Shown here: positions 46,472 to 61,194 of the stretch, piece after piece
Position numbering within the stretch: position 1 is the stretch's first letter
Layout of the letters: every line of letters begins with the position of its first letter
Sequence record: NC_016163.1
DNA: 64,000 bases
Direction: 5' to 3' (one strand)
The notes under the pieces: model-generated
Databases searched by the model: none
What the model was told of the DNA's origin: nothing
Seen by the model: the letters and a program-made list of their open reading frames with translations, nothing else
Made by a program: the position numbers and the translations under genes

Positions 46472-46864
46472 ATGCAGCTAACTTTACAAGACCGACCACT
46501 TTCTCTCAGTGAAACTTTAGAAGCTCGTTTTAAGGAAAATGGTATCAATGCCAGGATGCTATCTTTCGCTATTAAAGAAAGTCAAAGTTATATAAGTGAT
46601 CTTATGAATGGTAAAATATCACTTAGCTCTTCAATGGCTTTAAAATTATCAGTATTTTTTGAAACCACTCCTGACTATTGGTATCGGGTGGAATATAAAT
46701 ATAATCTTTACAAACAACGTAATGATAAAGTATTTGTAGATCAAACTATGAGAAATATTACTCCTATCTCTCAAGGATATAAAGAATTCGATCCTACAAA
46801 ATATGAAGATGATCGAGTTTATAAACCATTACACTTATCAAGTTCTCTCTATAGTGGATTATAA
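46472..46864 (+). CDS. higA: HigA/VapI-like XRE-family HTH antitoxin (copy 1)
   Basis: SYISDLMNGKISLSSSMALKLSVFFETTPDYW. Confidence 0.75.
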   Translation: MQLTLQDRPLSLSETLEARFKENGINARMLSFAIKESQSYISDLMNGKISLSSSMALKLSVFFETTPDYWYRVEYKYNLYKQRNDKVFVDQTMRNITPISQGYKEFDPTKYEDDRVYKPLHLSSSLYSGL

Positions 46865-46873
46865 GGAATACCA

Positions 46874-47188
46874 ATGACTGATACTATTCGAATCCCAACT
46901 CATCCAGGAATTATTCTTAAAGAAGAATTTATGGATTCTCAACCTAAAATTACAGTTATTGAAATCTGTAAACGAACTAATATCTCAGCATCATATCTTC
47001 GTCGATTTATCAAAGGTGCTGAAGAAATCACAACTAATGTAGCTATTTGTTTAGCTAAGATATTTAATACTACTCCTGATTTTTGGTTGAATCTGAATAC
47101 TCAGCATTATACTGCTAAGCTTTTAGCTGATAAAGGTTATTCGGAAAGATTGAATTCTATCGAACCATTTAACTTTATTCAGAGTTAA
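46874..47188 (+). CDS. higA: HigA/VapI-like XRE-family HTH antitoxin (copy 2)
   Basis: THPGIILKEEF...EITTNVAICLAKIFNTTPDFWLNL is a typical HigA signature. Confidence 0.85.
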   Translation: MTDTIRIPTHPGIILKEEFMDSQPKITVIEICKRTNISASYLRRFIKGAEEITTNVAICLAKIFNTTPDFWLNLNTQHYTAKLLADKGYSERLNSIEPFNFIQS

Positions 47189-47608: not shown

Positions 47609-48931
47609 ATGGTTAAGACTAAAAAAGTAGATATCGCTCCAGAAGATTCATATACTGGTAAGGATATTAAAGAATTACCATATCCAGTCAATATTCAGAC
47701 TCGTCCACAAATGTATGTGGGGGAAACTGATTCAACAGGTAAACTGACTTGTATCCGAGAAATTCTTAATAACTCAGTCGATGAATTCTTGGCTGGACAT
47801 TGTAACCAAATCAATATTTATCGTTTGGATATCGACCACTATGTTATTGAAGATAACGGTCGTGGTGTTCCATTTGATAAACATGAGACTGGTAAAAATA
47901 CTCTAGAAACAATCTTTGGCGTACTACATGCTGGTCGAAACTTTAAGAAAAAGACTGTATATAGTACTGGTCTTAACGGTGTTGGTGCGTCAGTAGTAAA
48001 CGCATTATCTGAAGTATTCAAAGTTACTTCTCACCGTGGAAATGACGTAGGTATTATTGAATTCTCAGATGGTTACAAACAGAAAATCACTCTGTCTACC
48101 GTTACTAAACTCAAACTCAAATTCCAAAAGGGATTTGATAAGAAAGGTACTGGTGTAGAATTCAAATTTAATCCAGAGTTCTTTGAACCGGATTCTGATT
48201 TAGATATCCAGGAAGTACTTGATTTAATCCGTAAAACTGCTTACATGGTAAGCGGATTAAAGCTTAAATTCGTGGATATGGTAGATTCTAAAAATAACGT
48301 AACTTTTGATTATGAGAATGGTGTTTCAGATCTCTTAGAAGAGATTAACCCAGCCTCTATTATCAAACCAGCGTATTTTAAACCTGTCACTATTAATGAA
48401 ACCAAAGTTGAAGTAAGTTTCAGCTTTAGTGAAAAATTTGATAGTGAAAATATTGAATCGTTCTGTAATACCATCCGTACTGGTGATGGCGGTGTACACG
48501 TTACAGGATTTAAACGTAGTTTCAGTCAAAAAGTTACCAATTTCATTAAAGAAAATGGTTTAACTAAAGAAAAGATTGAAAACAGTGACGTATTTGTAGG
48601 CTTGAATGCAGTAGTATCTGTATTCGTATTCAATCCTAAATATTCTACTCAGACTAAGCAAAAACTTAGTAATACTGAAGTAGAAGGTCATGTATTGCGA
48701 GCCATGAATAAATGGCTTGATGAATGGCTTGAAGCTAACCCTAAAGAAGTTAAGACTCTTGCTACTAAAATTGCACTTACTGCTAAATCTCGTATTGCTC
48801 AAAAGCGTGCTTTAGACAGTGTTAAGAAAGAGCAATCAGGTACATTCCTCACTACACTTGCTGCTCCAGAGAAGTTTACGGATTGTAACAGTGATGATCG
48901 AATGGAATGTGAATTATTCTTAGTTGAGGGT
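47609..48931 (+). CDS. gyrB: DNA gyrase subunit B, exon 1 (join 47609..48931,50027..51097; 797 aa)
   Basis: GHKL motifs EILNNSVDE, DNGRGVP, GLNGVGASVVNALS; ends at ELFLVEG; promoter AACA-aagttt-TA at 47574-47585. Confidence 0.93.
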
Positions 48932-50026
48932 TAAAATGGCTCTCATTAAACCTCTTTAATTGTCTGGAAAACCTTAATTACCGCGAATTAAGACAACCAG
49001 CAGCGAAGCTTATGGTATTAACACCTATAAAGGATTATAGGATGCATAAGAACGTTCAACGACTATCGAAAGTACTTATGATAATTCATAGGGTAAATGA
49101 GTAGAGTAGCGCCAAGTGGTAGGTATCATAATGATAATAGTTATGAATAAATCCTTTAAAGCGAAACGGGAGGCAAAGGATTGAAGATATAGTCTGATCT
49201 GCATGGTGACATGTAGAGTTAGTTGAAAGTGATTTCTTAACAAAATCTTAGTATCTAAGAGGATTTAATTTATGCCAGTTAAGAAAACACATGCACAATT
49301 CGTAAAAGAAGTTGAATTAAGATTTGGAAAAGAATATACAGTTTTAGGGGAGTATAAAAACACTCATACTCCAATAAAACTGCGGCATAATAAATGTGGT
49401 AATATATGGGAAACTACTGCTCCATATGATTTACTAAAACCAAAACCTAATGGTTGTAAATTATGTGCAATTAATAGATCATTTCCATTGACTACTAAAG
49501 AATTTTCAGTTAAACTAAATGCAATTCATAATAATTCTTATAAAGTTCTGCAAGAATATAAGAATAATAAAACCAAAATTTTAGTTCGCCATAATTGCGG
49601 ATATGAATTTATGGTTAAACCGAATAGCATTCTAACAGAAAAGTTTAATTGCCAATCATGCCAAAAAACAAATTCAGTAATAAGTGATTCAATTGCTGAA
49701 TTTCTTAATGAAGAAAATCTTAATTTCATCCAAGAAAAAAAGTTTAAATGGTTAAAATATGAATCTCTATTATCTATAGATTTCTATCTGCCAGATTTTA
49801 AAATTGGTATAGAAGCTGATGGAGAACAACACTACATTCCTAAACGTGGTGGAATTAAAGAGTTTGAAAAAACTCTTAAGAGAGATTTGATCAAATTTAA
49901 ACTTTGTAAAGAACATGGTATAGAAATACTGAGAATACCTAGTTTTTTAACTAAAAAAGAAATTTCTTTGTATCTTGGAAAACTTCTTTTAGAAAGAAAT
50001 GTCTTTCAACTAGATTAACACAAATG
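48932..50026 (+). mobile_element. Group I intron in gyrB (1095 nt) with homing endonuclease
   Basis: Exon ends in U48931 and intron ends in G50026; splicing restores EG|DSAGG; P1 ugagggu/gcucuca; core P aattgtctggaaa, Q caaccagcagc, R gttcaacgacta, S aagatatagtct. Confidence 0.93.
49272..50018 (+). CDS. Intron-encoded endonuclease: Zn-ribbon repeats plus Vsr-like PD-(D/E)xK domain
   Basis: Two repeats ending in CxxC; IDFYLPDFKIGIEADGEQH. Confidence 0.8.
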   Translation: MPVKKTHAQFVKEVELRFGKEYTVLGEYKNTHTPIKLRHNKCGNIWETTAPYDLLKPKPNGCKLCAINRSFPLTTKEFSVKLNAIHNNSYKVLQEYKNNKTKILVRHNCGYEFMVKPNSILTEKFNCQSCQKTNSVISDSIAEFLNEENLNFIQEKKFKWLKYESLLSIDFYLPDFKIGIEADGEQHYIPKRGGIKEFEKTLKRDLIKFKLCKEHGIEILRIPSFLTKKEISLYLGKLLLERNVFQLD

Positions 50027-51097
50027 GATTCAGCGGGTGGCTCAATAAAACAAGTACTTGATAGAGAAACTCAAGCAGTATATAAGCTTAAGGGTAAACC
50101 TAAAAATACTCTTAAAGATGGTGTAGAAGACCTTTACAAGAATAAAGAAACTGATGATATCATTTCTATTCTACGTTGTGGTATGGGCCGTAACTACTCT
50201 TCAGAGAAACTTCGTTTTGGTAAGATCATTCAGTTGTGTGACTCCGACTCAGATGGTAAACACATTGAAATGCTATTATCCACATTGTTTTCTAACCATT
50301 TCCGCCCATTAGTTGCTGAAGGGCGTGTGTATATTTGTCTTTCTCCTCTCTATCGTGTTATTCGTTCAGGTGTACCACCAGTATACTTCAAGAATGACAA
50401 AGAACTTGAGAGTTTCTTATCAAATCAGCTGGCAGAGGATTTTGCCTTTAAAAATGCTGCTGGTAAGAAAATGAATGAGAAAAACACCTCTAATTTGATT
50501 TCATTAATTCGTAAATATCGTAATGAGATTAATAAAGTAGCTAAAAAGTATCATAGTGATTCTAAACGAATTGAAGCTGTATTCGTAAATAATTATGATG
50601 CTGAAGAAGGATGGTTTGATTTTGAGTTGGAAGTCGAAGAACATAAGAATGAAAGTATCACTATTAAAGGATTCTACGAATTCGATAACGGTGAATCTTA
50701 TGTATACCTGAACGTACCAGCTATTGAAACATTCTTAGAAGAAATTGAGAATCTTCAAGAGTTATTAGCAGAGATTCATGAAAAGTTCTTTGTATTTGAC
50801 AAGAAAAATAATCCTATTGAACGAGAAACAATGATTGAATCTGTTGATTTCTTAATTGATAAGGTAACTAAATCTTGTACAATTACCCGTTATAAAGGAT
50901 TGGGAGAGTCTAATCCAGATGACCTTAAAGAAATCTGTCTTGACCCTAAGAATCGCACCTTAATTCAAATCAAGATTGGTAGCGAGGAAGAAGTTAAAGA
51001 AGTTCTTGAGAACTATATGTTAGACAAGAACGTGGAATATCGTCAGAAATTCCTGCTTGAACACTTCGACCAGAATCTGCTAGAATCAGATATCTAA
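50027..51097 (+). CDS. gyrB: DNA gyrase subunit B, exon 2 (Toprim and tail)
   Basis: DSAGG, DSDSDG, YKGLGESNP. Confidence 0.93.
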   Translation, partial: DSAGGSIKQVLDRETQAVYKLKGKPKNTLKDGVEDLYKNKETDDIISILRCGMGRNYSSEKLRFGKIIQLCDSDSDGKHIEMLLSTLFSNHFRPLVAEGRVYICLSPLYRVIRSGVPPVYFKNDKELESFLSNQLAEDFAFKNAAGKKMNEKNTSNLISLIRKYRNEINKVAKKYHSDSKRIEAVFVNNYDAEEGWFDFELEVEEHKNESITIKGFYEFDNGESYVYLNVPAIETFLEEIENLQELLAEIHEKFFVFDKKNNPIERETMIESVDFLIDKVTKSCTITRYKGLGESNPDDLKEICLDPKNRTLIQIKIGSEEEVKEVLENYMLDKNVEYRQKFLLEHFDQNLLESDI

Positions 51098-57405: not shown

Positions 57406-57615
57406 ATGGCTGAAAACATTGTTCAGCAATCCCTTGAGGAAGTATTTGCAGAACGTTTCAAAACTTATGGTAGTGAAACTGTAAAAGAACGTTCTATTCC
57501 TTCTGTAGAAGATGGATTCTTACCCGTAATGCGTCGTATTATTTATACTATGTATAAAGAAGGTGCTTATCCACGTTTTACTAAAGCTGCTCAATTTGTA
57601 GGTACTACTATTGGT
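57406..57615 (+). CDS. gyrA: DNA gyrase subunit A, exon 1 (join 57406..57615,58906..61194; 832 aa)
   Basis: RSIPSVEDGFLPVMRRII, KAAQFVGTTIG; promoter AACA-aatatt-TG at 57364-57375. Confidence 0.92.
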
Positions 57616-58905
57616 TAACTTATATCTTTTTAGTACTATCTAGTGATGTATCCTCCCAAAATTGATCCCTAACAGTGTTTTAGTATCTATAAGGATCAAT
57701 TATGAAAAGTAAATCAAAACAACTTAAGATAATTAGCAAGAAGTATTTAAATGCATTAGATTTCTATTATAGTAATGACCATTCGGCAACTTTTGTAGCC
57801 AAAAAATTTCAGCTATCAAAAAATACTTTGTTGAGAATGGTTCGTCTTGGAAATTTTGAAGAATTACCTGATGGTAATATAGCTGAAAAAGATCAAGATT
57901 ATTATATGTGGAAAAATATAATGCATATTTACAAAACTACTAATAAATCGGCTAATGAATTATGTCTAGAATTCAATGTAGGTAAATCATCCTTTGCTAA
58001 AAATCTTAAATATTTTAATTTAAGTTATAAAGGTAGGAGTAACCTGATTGAATTTAAAAGAGATATATTTTCTAAAATAGATTCAAGCGATAAAGCATAC
58101 TGGCTTGGGTTTATTTTAGCTGATGGTTGCATTTATAAAAATGAATTGCGGCTTAAATTAGGGAAAGTAGATTACGTTCATTTGCAAAAATATTGTGATT
58201 TTTTAGGGCTGAGTCATAATCATATTGTTAAAGATGCACATACAATAAAAGTAATTGTATGTGATAAAAAAATGATTATCGATCTTAATAAATTAAATAT
58301 TTTTTCTAAAAAATCATGTAAAGAAATTCCACCCATAATAGATCCTATTTTTCATAGAGATCTATTACGTGGATTCTTTGATGGCGATGGATGTATTAAA
58401 ACAAATCTTGCTTCAATATCTTTAGTAGGTAGTAAGGATATGATGGATTTCTGCAATAAAGTATTCCATGAAGAATTAGGAATACCTTTAGGTAAAGTCT
58501 ATTCAGATAAAAAAGTTTATAGATTGGCTTGGTATAGTCTTTTCAATAAACAAAGTATCCTTAGTTGGTTATATGATGGGAGTCATACATATTTAGATAG
58601 GAAATTTAGCTTAGCTAAAAAGATTGGCCGTCTATGAAAGTAATTTTATAGATTATTATTGGGGAAGAAAACGGGAAGGGTTTAGCTATCCTAATCCGAC
58701 TGGAAGGCTATATTTAAAAGTATAGTCACAGGCAACGCATAGTAGGTGAACCTTATAGCGATATAAGAATATAATCCTGCCACGAGTCCCCGACATCCTA
58801 TATAGGATGAAAAGATATGCTAGGCTGGATTGGAAAAGACCAATCGATGAAAATGAGGGAAACCTCCAGAGAGTAAGATAAAAAGCTTACTGTTAATAAC
58901 TACCG
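57616..58905 (+). mobile_element. Group I intron in gyrA (1290 nt) with LAGLIDADG endonuclease
   Basis: Exon ends in U57615 and intron ends in G58905; splicing restores IG|RYHPHGD; core after the ORF: aaaacgggaagg, aatccgac, ggcaacgcatag, aagatatgctag. Confidence 0.92.
57702..58637 (+). CDS. Intron-encoded two-motif LAGLIDADG homing endonuclease with N-terminal HTH-like region
   Basis: AYWLGFILADG and LLRGFFDGDG motifs. Confidence 0.9.
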   Translation: MKSKSKQLKIISKKYLNALDFYYSNDHSATFVAKKFQLSKNTLLRMVRLGNFEELPDGNIAEKDQDYYMWKNIMHIYKTTNKSANELCLEFNVGKSSFAKNLKYFNLSYKGRSNLIEFKRDIFSKIDSSDKAYWLGFILADGCIYKNELRLKLGKVDYVHLQKYCDFLGLSHNHIVKDAHTIKVIVCDKKMIIDLNKLNIFSKKSCKEIPPIIDPIFHRDLLRGFFDGDGCIKTNLASISLVGSKDMMDFCNKVFHEELGIPLGKVYSDKKVYRLAWYSLFNKQSILSWLYDGSHTYLDRKFSLAKKIGRL

Positions 58906-61194
58906 CGTTACCACCCTCACGGTGATAGTTCTTGCTATGAATCAATGGTTGGTATGTCTCAAGGATTCCGTAAATTGAATCCACTTATTGACCCTCAAGG
59001 TAATAATGGTTCAGTAGATGATTTTAAGTCATTTGCGGCAATGCGATATCTTGAACTGCGTCTTTCTGCTTTTACAAGAGATGTATTCTTCTCTAACTTC
59101 TCTGAGAAGAATAATAACTTCGTTCCTAACTATGATAAAACTCATTTGGAACCGGAAGTATTTACTCCAGTAATTCCAACCATTTTAAATAACGGTATTA
59201 CCGCTATTGCATCAGGCTTCGTCTGTAACCTTCCAACACATCGTGTAACGGATATTGTAGAAGTTACTAAACGTCTGATTGCTGATGCAGACATTAGTGA
59301 TAAAGAACTAGCTAAAGGTTTTTATCCAGACTTTCCTTTAGGTGCCACTATCATTAACCGTGATGACCTGATTGATATGTACACCAAAGGTCAAGGTGTA
59401 ATTCAGGTTCAGGCAACATTAGAAGATGGCGATTTTAAAGGTAAGCCAGCTATTATTGTACGTGATCTTCCTCCAGAAGTAAGCGTTAACAAAATACTTG
59501 AACAAATTCGTTTTGGTCTTACGCCAGAAGATGTTAAAAAAGCTAAGAAAAAGAAAACTCTTACTAAACCTGGATGCCTAATTGAGCTTATTCAGGATGT
59601 TAAAGATATCAGTACCAAAAAAGAAGGTATCGGTATCGCATTACTTCTTAAAAAAGGTGTAGATTCCGGTACCGTTAAAAACGTATTGTATAAATCTACA
59701 AGTCTACGTTATTCTGTAAAATATCAGGCTAACGTACTTATTGAAGGTAAGCTAGAATCTAACTGTTCTCTTAAGAAACTACTCAGTACTTGGGTGGCTT
59801 TCCGTCGCAATACAGTTCGTCGTATTCTTAATATTAAGATTGCAGATTATTCTGAACAGCAATCTCTTAAACAAGCTTTAATTAAAGCCCTAGGCAAGAT
59901 CGATAAAGTTATCGAAATTGTTCAAAATGCATCTGATAAGAAAGAAGCTATTGATAAAATTCGTAAGCTTCTCTCAATTGGATTCAACCAAGCAACATAT
60001 ATCGTTGAAACCAAACTTTATCAGCTATCAAAAATGTCTGTCCAAGATCTTAAAGACGAAATTAAGACTCTTGGAGAAAAGATTAAAGAATCCGTAGAAA
60101 CTATTTCTGATGATCATCGTATTGATGAAATCATTGTAGAAGAAATGGATAGAATTATTGAGAAACACTGTAAGAAAGAAAAACGTACTACAGATGTAAT
60201 CAATATTACTAGCTCTCTTGATGATGTTAAAGCTTTTGTTCAACCAGAGAATTTAGTAATTGGTTTTGCTAAAGAAATGGATGATTTGGATAATGCAGGT
60301 TATTCCTCTAATGCTTATGTATTTGCCAAATCAACTGATGAAATCATTTCTGGTGATACTCGCGGTCGTAAAGGTCAGAATTTTGTACCTAGTACGGTTA
60401 AGAAAGTAATTATTGAGACATTCACTGTAAATACTCATGATTATATTCTATGCTTTACTACTGACGGTAAATTGATTATTCGTCAGGGATATGAATTCAA
60501 TATGTGGAATAAACCTATTGGGGCTATTCTTAATCTGGAAGGTCGCCGTATTAGTACTATTATTCCTATCACTGAAAAAGATCTAGACAAATATCTTGTA
60601 TTTGTCACTGAAGCAGGTTATATGAAACGTATCCCTGTTGATGGATTTGATCTTAATCGTAAAGCGGCAGTTATTGCTATTAAACCTACAGAGGGCGATA
60701 TTCTTAAAGCCGTATCTTTGTCTCTTTCTGAGATTGATAATGTGTTTGTATACTCTAATGAGGGTAAGGCTCAACGTCTGTTAGCTTCTCAGATTGATGA
60801 AATGACCAGAGCATCTGCCGGACGTTGCCGTTTGACACTAGGTGAAGATGAATACGTAGTAGGTCTAACTGTAGGTAATACAGATACTACTAAAATTCTG
60901 ATGTGTGCAAGTAATGGTAAAGGTAAGATCATTGACCTTGAAGAATTCCCACTTCGTCGTGGTGATAAAGGTCGTCGTTCTATGCTTAAAGCAATTACTC
61001 TGGCAGAAGGGGAAATGCTTATTGGAGCTTTGATTGTCAAAGAAGAAGATTCTGTAGCATTCAATACTTCTAATAACAAAATTGTGTCTCTGAATGTAGC
61101 TAATGTTACCACTCTTGGACGTAATGCCAAAGGTATGACTCTAGCTAAGCCAAGTGAAGGTGAGATTATTACATCCATCACTTATTCTAATTAA
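58906..61194 (+). CDS. gyrA: DNA gyrase subunit A, exon 2 (catalytic Tyr, coiled coil, beta-pinwheel CTD)
   Basis: [31 protein letters not shown] repeats, GyrA-box-like TRGRKGQ. Confidence 0.93.

Follow-up and report, generated by a model that had tools for sequence, protein, structure and literature searches.

In Yersinia phage phiR1-37, a group I intron splits the gyrB-like gene for topoisomerase II, and it is very probably a mobile, self-splicing one of the type known as IA2. phiR1-37 is a jumbo phage with a 262-kb genome, in whose DNA deoxyuridine (dU) replaces thymidine (PMC7598289); the interrupted gene is the only gyrB-like topoisomerase II gene it has. The DNA we analyzed, called the window throughout, is a stretch of 64,000 nucleotides (bases 186001-250000 of AJ972879.2 / NC_016163.1), and all positions are window positions unless marked as genome positions. 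The 3.5 kb around the intron are 100% identical to phiR1-37 bases 233600-237100. GenBank has four separate genes at this locus and annotates no intron: g311 ('DNA-topoisomerase II B-subunit'), g312 (30 codons) and g313, both without a name, and g314 ('DNA-gyrase B-subunit'). Our reading corrects the annotation of a reference jumbo phage. g311 and g314 belong together as a single gene, g312 does not count as one, and g313 is predicted to encode a Vsr-like homing endonuclease, not an HNH enzyme. Proteomic, transcriptomic and phylogenetic studies that take the phiR1-37 GyrB as two proteins would be misled. The intron itself is genuine and absent from public annotation. It belongs to a familiar class of phage elements and is nothing out of the ordinary within it. 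Ever since T4, textbooks have described self-splicing introns that carry homing endonucleases in phage genes for DNA metabolism, and a specialist will not be surprised to meet another.

One gene in two pieces

Each exon carries its share of a familiar enzyme. Pfam recognizes DNA_gyraseB (1.9e-39) and HATPase_c in exon 1, and Toprim (3.7e-08) and DNA_gyraseB_C (9.1e-17) in exon 2; on PHROG 543, the two occupy positions 11-444 and 445-643. Exon 1 ends ...GAG GGT at 48931 and runs directly into a TAA stop (48932-48934), while exon 2 opens GAT TCA GCG GGT at 50027. Aligned by blastp, exon by exon, with the uninterrupted GyrB of phage AR9, exon 1 covers residues 1-427 and exon 2 continues from 428; on the equally uninterrupted GyrB of Listeria phage LPJP1, exon 1 reaches residue 430 and exon 2 starts from 431. 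The junction gives back (I/C)EG followed by (N/D)SA, exactly, on both intact proteins. The exon matches also abut by tblastn in every listed record where both reach the junction, including S6, PBS1, vB_StaM_SA1 and bacterial gyrB. Because the exon ends abut on the intact AR9 and LPJP1 proteins, the bounds of the intron follow: 48932-50026, within the Toprim motif EGDSA, where it separates the Gly codon from the Asp codon. A first-pass annotation, made from the letters of the window alone, had put the split at just this point, between EG and DSA. It had also dismissed an open reading frame starting at 50024 as an artifact of the junction, and correctly so: the ATG at 50024 is the final three bases of the intron. 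GenBank's coding sequence g314 begins at that same ATG, and this start is an annotation artifact.

The ribozyme

The first-pass annotation called the interruption a group I intron, with a seven-pair P1 and P, Q, R and S elements within 48959-49196, and all three proposals hold. Rfam model RF00028, whose gathering score is 50 bits, matches the + strand at 48911-49216 over its full length (1-253), with 69.8 bits and an E-value of 1.2e-15; this is the sole Rfam match in the window. In P1, UGAGGGU (48925-31) pairs with GCUCUCA (48939-45) as UA, GC, AU, GC, GU, GC and UG, which sets the U48931.G48939 wobble at the 5' splice site. The core lies at 48951-49216 (Table 1), its elements in the order P3, P4, P5, P6, P7, P7.1 and a second hairpin, P3', P8, P7' and P9. 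Rfam alignment and local folds agree that the ~100 nucleotides (nt) between P7 and P3' form extra hairpins. Such hairpins, P7.1 and P7.2, characterize the IA2 introns of T-even phages, and it is by them that we assign the gyrB intron to the phage IA2 type, like the T-even td and nrdD introns. GenBank's g312, which sits inside P6-P7.1, is no gene and an annotation artifact. Beyond P9 come two small hairpins and then the open reading frame g313. At the far end of the intron, A50024-U50025 is able to pair with A49197-U49198 of J7/9 as P9.0. An 8-bp long-range pairing (49150-49157 with 49176-49183) was considered instead of P8 and rejected; both differences in a sister intron, L003, disrupt it, and the 3-bp hairpin is kept.

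The helices persist while their sequences change. Our comparison set consisted of a 95%-identical metagenome relative (L010), two distant relatives (L012 and L044) and two sister introns from elsewhere in the phiR1-37 genome, one in the virion RNA polymerase beta' gene (L003) and one in a helicase gene (L005). The outermost P1 pair changes from U-A to C-G in L010, so that exon wobble base and guide change together, a compensatory exchange. P3, P7.1 and P9 remain paired despite changes in one or both strands across L010, L003, L005 and L012; in P7.1 of L010 and L003, both strands carry several changes and still pair. P7 of L044 is altered on both strands, from GACUA/UAGUC to GAUCA/UGAUC. The 3' tail AACAYAAAUG/G is common to four introns (the gyrB intron, L012, L003 and L005), and the L044 tail is a close variant, AACAUAUG/G. 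The P9.0 complementarity of the two bases before the terminal G is kept too: AU/GAU in the gyrB intron, CU/GGG in L003, where the partners co-change, and AU/GGU in L012, where they remain compatible. Rfam gives the introns of the relatives L010 and L044 68 bits and 77.8 bits.

Table 1. Positions of the exons, the intron and its parts, and of related elements, in the window unless marked genome
Feature	Position	Strand	Remarks
gyrB-like exon 1 (g311)	47609..48931	+	441 codons; GHKL ATPase and transducer domains; ends ...LVEG
Group I intron	48932..50026	+	1095 nt; from RF00028 match, exon-by-exon alignment, P1 and terminal G
P1	48925..48945	+	last 7 exon bases 48925-48931 with guide 48939-48945; loop 48932-48938
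Catalytic core	48951..49216	+	from Rfam alignment and local folds
P3	48951-56 / 49168-73	+	
P4	48961-67 / 48997-49002	+	
P5	48972-79 / 48986-92	+	
P6, with an extension	49007-13 / 49046-50	+	
P7	within 49054-65 / 49184-95	+	
P7.1	49075-92	+	
Second hairpin, between P7 and P3'	around 49122-47	+	
P8	49174-83	+	3 bp
P9	49199-49216	+	
GenBank 'g312', artifact	49012..49104	+	30 codons within P6-P7.1; published mean reads 0 / 1.2 / 0
Likely late promoter AACA-N6-TA and small hairpin	49239..49263	+	promoter 49239-49250, start A49250; hairpin 49246-49260
Intron open reading frame g313	49272..50018	+	248 residues; two zinc-finger repeats and predicted Vsr-like nuclease domain
Conserved 3' tail (..AACACAAAUG)	50013..50026	+	terminal G50026 at end; common to sister and relative introns
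gyrB-like exon 2 (g314 minus first codon)	50027..51097	+	rest of Toprim and C-terminal domain; starts DSAGG
AACA-N6-TAGTA occurrences	432, 5398(-), 7846(-), 12051, 15533(-), 34760(-), 40520(-), 49239, 57671		
beta' intron (L003 484-1896)	genome 123437-124849		splits virion RNA polymerase beta' gene g178 / g181 inside DFDG/D
Helicase intron (L005 581-1670)	genome 252371-253460		splits DnaB-like helicase g335 / g337 at Walker A motif

Transcripts and the case for splicing

phiR1-37 needs splicing here to make its GyrB and in all likelihood achieves it, as far as sequence can tell. Published transcript counts lean the same way. In the RNA-seq study of Leskinen et al. 2016 (PMC4848604 Table S2), mean reads in the early, middle and late phases were 1087 / 2288 / 5082 for g311, 0 / 1.2 / 0 for g312, 364 / 520 / 873 for g313 and 1705 / 4823 / 12054 for g314. 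Divided by gene length, the late counts come to 3.8 reads per base for g311, 0 for g312, 1.2 for g313 and 11.2 for g314; across the published per-gene counts, read density in the intron is 3-10 times below that of both exons. Such depletion is as expected if the intron is removed and decays, and it is supportive evidence, not more. The word 'intron' is absent from that paper and its supplement (PMC4848604). One of its small RNAs, misc_4, was considered as the excised intron and rejected, for it lies elsewhere, at genome 61,640-61,936.

The wider literature is similarly quiet. Those publications consulted that name the phage make no link between phiR1-37 and introns in its own genes, a search that did not extend to the 2012 genome paper. 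We found no paper in which a group I intron and gyrase are treated along with jumbo phages and a homing endonuclease, and among the titles found for group I introns, gyrB and phages, none concerns such an intron.

Directly upstream of the gyrB operon lie two neighboring HigA-like antitoxin-type genes, g308 and g309 (46472-47188).

The endonuclease inside the intron

The whole of g313 falls within the intron, downstream of the P9 region. After its stop codon come seven bases (50019-50025) and then, as the eighth, the terminal G50026, the very spacing the first-pass annotation had described for a reading frame that follows the P9 hairpin. The same annotation had taken the product for a Zn-ribbon-repeat protein with a Vsr-like nuclease, neither HNH nor GIY-YIG, and structure prediction comes down on its side. 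In the N-terminal half, two His/Cys-x2-Cys...Cys-x2-Cys zinc-finger repeats span residues about 20-130 (from the family's Cys positions, with the ligands read from the translation). An AlphaFold2 model built on a 34-member family alignment has a mean predicted local distance difference test score of 92.6. The best fold match to its residues 133-246, by VIA-align, is 3R3P, the catalytic domain of I-Bth0305I (Z 11.8, root-mean-square deviation 2.8 A, 95/97 residues), followed by Escherichia coli Vsr (Z 11.6 for 1cw0, 10.8 for 1vsr) and the DUF559-type protein 3HRL (Z 9.9); unrelated nuclease folds reach Z <=7.9. Neither the C-terminal domain alone nor the 34-sequence profile has a significant PDB match, so the link to Vsr is one of fold comparison. 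Six residues, D170, E181, G184, H187, D205 and K208, are invariant among the 34 homologues, and the motif D-x10-E-x-D-x3-H lines up with the Vsr-like domain of AbaSI. Homologues number several hundred; within the 34-member family, DUF4379 (a treble-clef zinc finger) is found in 26/34, DUF2726 in 19/34 and CapR in 18/34.

By its modeled fold, then, g313 is a zinc-finger protein with a Vsr-like endonuclease domain, probably of the EDxHD type, and neither HNH nor GIY-YIG. The 'HNH endonuclease' label that RefSeq gives it, shared by PHROG 559, looks like a carried-over misnomer and we rejected it: there is no HNH motif, no HNH Pfam family appears at E 0.01 or better, no listed fold match is titled HNH, and the best folds are all Vsr-like. 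The supplement of the phiR1-37 RNA-seq study already lists g313 as 'VSR endonuclease' (PMC4848604). I-Bth0305I defines the Vsr-like 'EDxHD' family of homing endonucleases (PMC3239194); the type that g313 appears to represent therefore already belongs to a named homing family.

A candidate late promoter

A short module precedes g313. The sequence at 49239-49250 agrees with AACA-(6N)-TA/G, the late-promoter consensus of phage AR9, whose last base is the transcription start (PMC5312081); AR9 is a related dU phage. A hairpin (49246-49260) holds the predicted start, A49250, in its 5' arm, and its 3' arm overlaps the g313 Shine-Dalgarno sequence, AAGAGGA (49257-49263). In phiR1-37, this hairpin is weak (-3.7 kcal/mol). 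The same layout of promoter, hairpin and ribosome-binding site stands before the reading frame in L012 and L044, with changed stem sequences.

Where 1.38 copies of the extended motif AACA-N6-TAGTA would be expected, the window has 9, a count that 0/100 shuffles reach. We consider it a candidate late promoter of phiR1-37, going by its enrichment and its agreement with the AR9 consensus. The published RNA-seq study of the phage could not define a late promoter (PMC4848604).

The motif also turns up, as AACA-N6-TAGTATCTA at 57671-57685, before the reading frame of an intron in gyrA (57606-58926), an intron that Rfam does not detect at its gathering score. There, the hairpin masking the ribosome-binding site is stronger, at -9.8 kcal/mol.

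How the intron would work

The proposed mechanism runs as follows. g311, the intron and g314 would be transcribed as a single pre-mRNA. Guanosine would attack after U48931, and the remote 3' end, ~810 nt beyond P9, would be returned to the core by P9.0 and the conserved tail. Ligation of the exons would then yield one GyrB of ~797 residues. Unspliced, exon 1 would stop immediately at the TAA, and the catalytic Glu would end up in one polypeptide, the remainder of the Toprim domain in another. g313 is probably expressed late, from an AACA-N6-TA promoter of its own; on read-through pre-mRNA, the small hairpin would partly cover its ribosome-binding site. The endonuclease would cleave the intron-less gyrB of a co-infecting relative near the GGT/GAT junction, and repair from the intron-bearing copy would spread the intron. 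This is homing. Because phiR1-37 DNA has dU in place of T, the enzyme would have to act on dU-DNA, which makes g313 a natural case for asking if a homing endonuclease works on uracil-containing DNA.

Weighing the alternatives

A number of observations weigh against a mobile, self-splicing intron and deserve to be seen together. P8 is merely 3 bp long, and P10 looks weak from the sequence, with at most three possible pairs. The five best RNA-seq runs contain the locus, all as assembled contigs; no spliced form appears in the four of them, from infected cells, that were compared with the window, each of which has one unspliced contig over both junctions. Since contigs lose minority forms and may include DNA, splicing is neither shown nor excluded by them. 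The published read counts are totals for whole genes rather than per-base values, and a score of 0 is common for very short genes. As for the endonuclease, g313 has Ser138, with Asp139 adjoining, where the family has the first Glu of EDxHD (by a family consensus read by eye), and the g313 sequence has no significant Pfam, NCBIfam or PDB match. Finally, a search of viral and metagenome contigs yielded no intron-less close relative; the only intron-less match there is a GyrB 32-34% identical.

The last two points feed the alternative that survives best: the intron splices yet is no longer mobile. It would be vertically inherited, its endonuclease inactive or else serving as a maturase or a general cutter of competitor DNA. 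Its distribution could be read this way, as every member of the phiR1-37 clade found has the intron. All six close relatives carry intron and reading frame, 90-98% identical; the distant relative L012 has identical site, reading-frame position and tail, with an endonuclease 51% identical; and L044, a 249-kb viral contig, has the identical site and reading-frame position, with exon 1 56%, exon 2 40% and the endonuclease 49% identical. Endonuclease and host gene have thus diverged to a similar extent (49-51% vs 40-56%), which, as sequence comparisons go, fits long co-descent, and the first acidic residue of EDxHD, in the consensus as read, is not conserved in g313. Against loss of mobility, the reading frame is intact in three lineages, with D170, E181, H187, D205 and K208 invariant, and the conserved module of promoter, hairpin and ribosome-binding site ahead of it argues for a working, regulated protein. 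The lack of intron-less relatives may just reflect sparse sampling. More distant GyrB genes, namely those of AR9, PBS1, S6 and LPJP1 and a metagenomic one, are uninterrupted at the phiR1-37 site. (A pattern for the 3' junction matched 19 viral contigs; one match was real, a close phiR1-37 relative, and the rest were rejected.) On balance, we think an immobile intron unlikely, if not strikingly so, and present-day homing of the gyrB intron plausible.

We give far less credence to a gene that is truly split without splicing, with g311 and g314 as assembling subunits, g313 free-standing and the ribozyme a dead remnant; such an arrangement strikes us as very improbable. GenBank and RefSeq annotate the locus in this form, an in-frame ATG (50024) stands ahead of exon 2, and the assembled RNA-seq contigs are unspliced. 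That ATG, however, lacks a good ribosome-binding site upstream and belongs to the 3' tail that sister introns in other genes have kept. The break parts the catalytic Glu-Gly from the Asp-Ser-Ala of the same motif; read density is higher in the exons than in the intron; and a ribozyme that scores above the Rfam cut-off and keeps its helices via compensatory changes is unlike a dead remnant. A chance resemblance to group I introns in AT-rich DNA, in favor of which there is only the low G+C of the matched stretch (36%), has next to no probability because the match has an E-value of 1.2e-15 and is the single one in 64 kb, and it is already refuted by the exact exon junction and by conservation of the element in distant relatives.

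Sister introns in the same genome

The mobile, self-splicing gyrB intron that we favor has company. Sub-threshold Rfam matches led to two more complete introns outside the window, both with endonucleases of the g313 family (24-28% identical to g313). In the beta' intron, P1 is GAUGGU/GCCAUC with a U.G pair, and the Rfam score is 44 bits, under the cut-off; its endonuclease, g179 (310 residues, zinc-finger/Vsr-like), sits in the P1 loop, and GenBank's g180 falls within the ribozyme. In the helicase gene, PHROG 19 positions 363/365 abut across the intron, whose endonuclease g336 sits in P6 and runs into the 3' core, where the TAG within the conserved element AAGAUAUAGUC serves as its stop codon.

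Over 225 nt of 3' core (window 48995-49217 vs L003 1637-1860), the gyrB ribozyme has 84% identity to that of the beta' intron. The beta' and helicase introns, for their part, share a near-identical 5' part or P5 extension (L003 1540-1640 vs L005 600-700). This pattern suggests mosaic ribozyme cores, with endonucleases that are old paralogues lodged in three different loops, and recombination between introns within the genome.

Elsewhere in the genome, the terminase large subunit comes in two parts (region 89566-93543), the N-terminal one at ~genome 89566-90276 and the C-terminal one, g145, from 92128. Between them lie a 526-residue reading frame, g144, and what resembles the 3' half of a group I intron (P7'-P9, 32.6 bits; genome 91924-92087), which immediately precedes the C-terminal part. 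The interruption may be a large or split intron.

Taken jointly, these elements could form a recombining, lineage-specific intron family: mosaic ribozyme pieces in gyrB, beta' and helicase genes; zinc-finger/Vsr endonucleases in L1, in P6 and after P9; late promoters for the non-virion RNA polymerase placed in hairpins that mask ribosome-binding sites; and enzymes adapted to dU-DNA. We offer this whole picture tentatively and think it less likely than not to hold. If it is true, phiR1-37 would be a compact model of the independent shuffling of intron cores and endonuclease genes, and AACA-N6-TAGTA would be its long-sought late promoter.

Comparison with known systems

T4 provides the obvious point of reference. 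The T4 sunY/nrdD intron, which encodes I-TevIII, and the T-even td intron likewise have a core of the phage IA2 type, in which extra hairpins separate P7 from P3'. In sunY/nrdD, as in the gyrB intron, the core comes first, the reading frame follows P9 and the 3' splice site is remote. In T4, the endonuclease reading frame also has its own promoter nearby, and the likely promoter and the hairpin before g313 resemble the arrangement of T4 intron endonucleases. The segment P7'-J7/9-P9 is 97% identical, over 35-36 nt, to those of the td intron of a T4-like phage and of an intron in phage phi92. The differences are just as clear. The host gene in phiR1-37 is a gyrB-like topoisomerase and not a gene of nucleotide metabolism, g313 is by prediction a Vsr-like enzyme with zinc fingers rather than GIY-YIG or HNH, P8 is cut to 3 bp, and the likely g313 promoter belongs to the class used by the non-virion RNA polymerase of jumbo phages.

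Closest in fold is I-Bth0305I, encoded in the recA intron of Bacillus phage 0305phi8-36 (PDB 3R3P; PMC3239194) and so also the product of a phage group I intron. Conserved Asp, His and Asp residues are shared across the family. I-Bth0305I and g313 have no significant sequence match, and g313 lacks the first Glu of the motif, in the consensus as read. To bind DNA, I-Bth0305I has an N-terminal part made of two NUMOD motifs and a putative helix-turn-helix, where g313 has its two zinc-finger repeats, and the I-Bth0305I reading frame lies in P5 (PMC3239194), not after P9.

Nearer in sequence are homologues in Staphylococcus Twort-like/Kay-like phages, annotated as 'group I intron-associated VSR homing endonuclease'. 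These and their counterparts in the Bacillus phages PBS1 and AR9 are full-length (34-40% identical over 88-97% of g313) and have the same zinc-finger and Vsr-like architecture. They are often found in interrupted terminase or other genes; host genes and hosts differ from those of g313. In the dU phages AR9 and PBS1, relatives of g313 occur 6-8 times.

Nor is an interrupted gyrB new among dU-type jumbo phages. In the Bacillus phages Internexus and BpSp and in Staphylococcus phage Machias, the Toprim domain of gyrB is interrupted as well, but some 80 codons further downstream, past DxDxDG, and with no annotated reading frame in the insertion. The Internexus insertion scores 64.7 bits with Rfam. 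Machias gyrB is annotated as a two-exon join, those of BpSp and Internexus as two separate coding sequences, and AR9, PBS1, S6 and LPJP1 have no intron at the phiR1-37 site or at the Internexus-type site. What had gone unannotated is the phiR1-37 site and its combination of intron and endonuclease. This site brings to two the independent intron positions in the phage gyrB Toprim domain, in keeping with the rule that homing elements target the catalytic motifs of essential genes.

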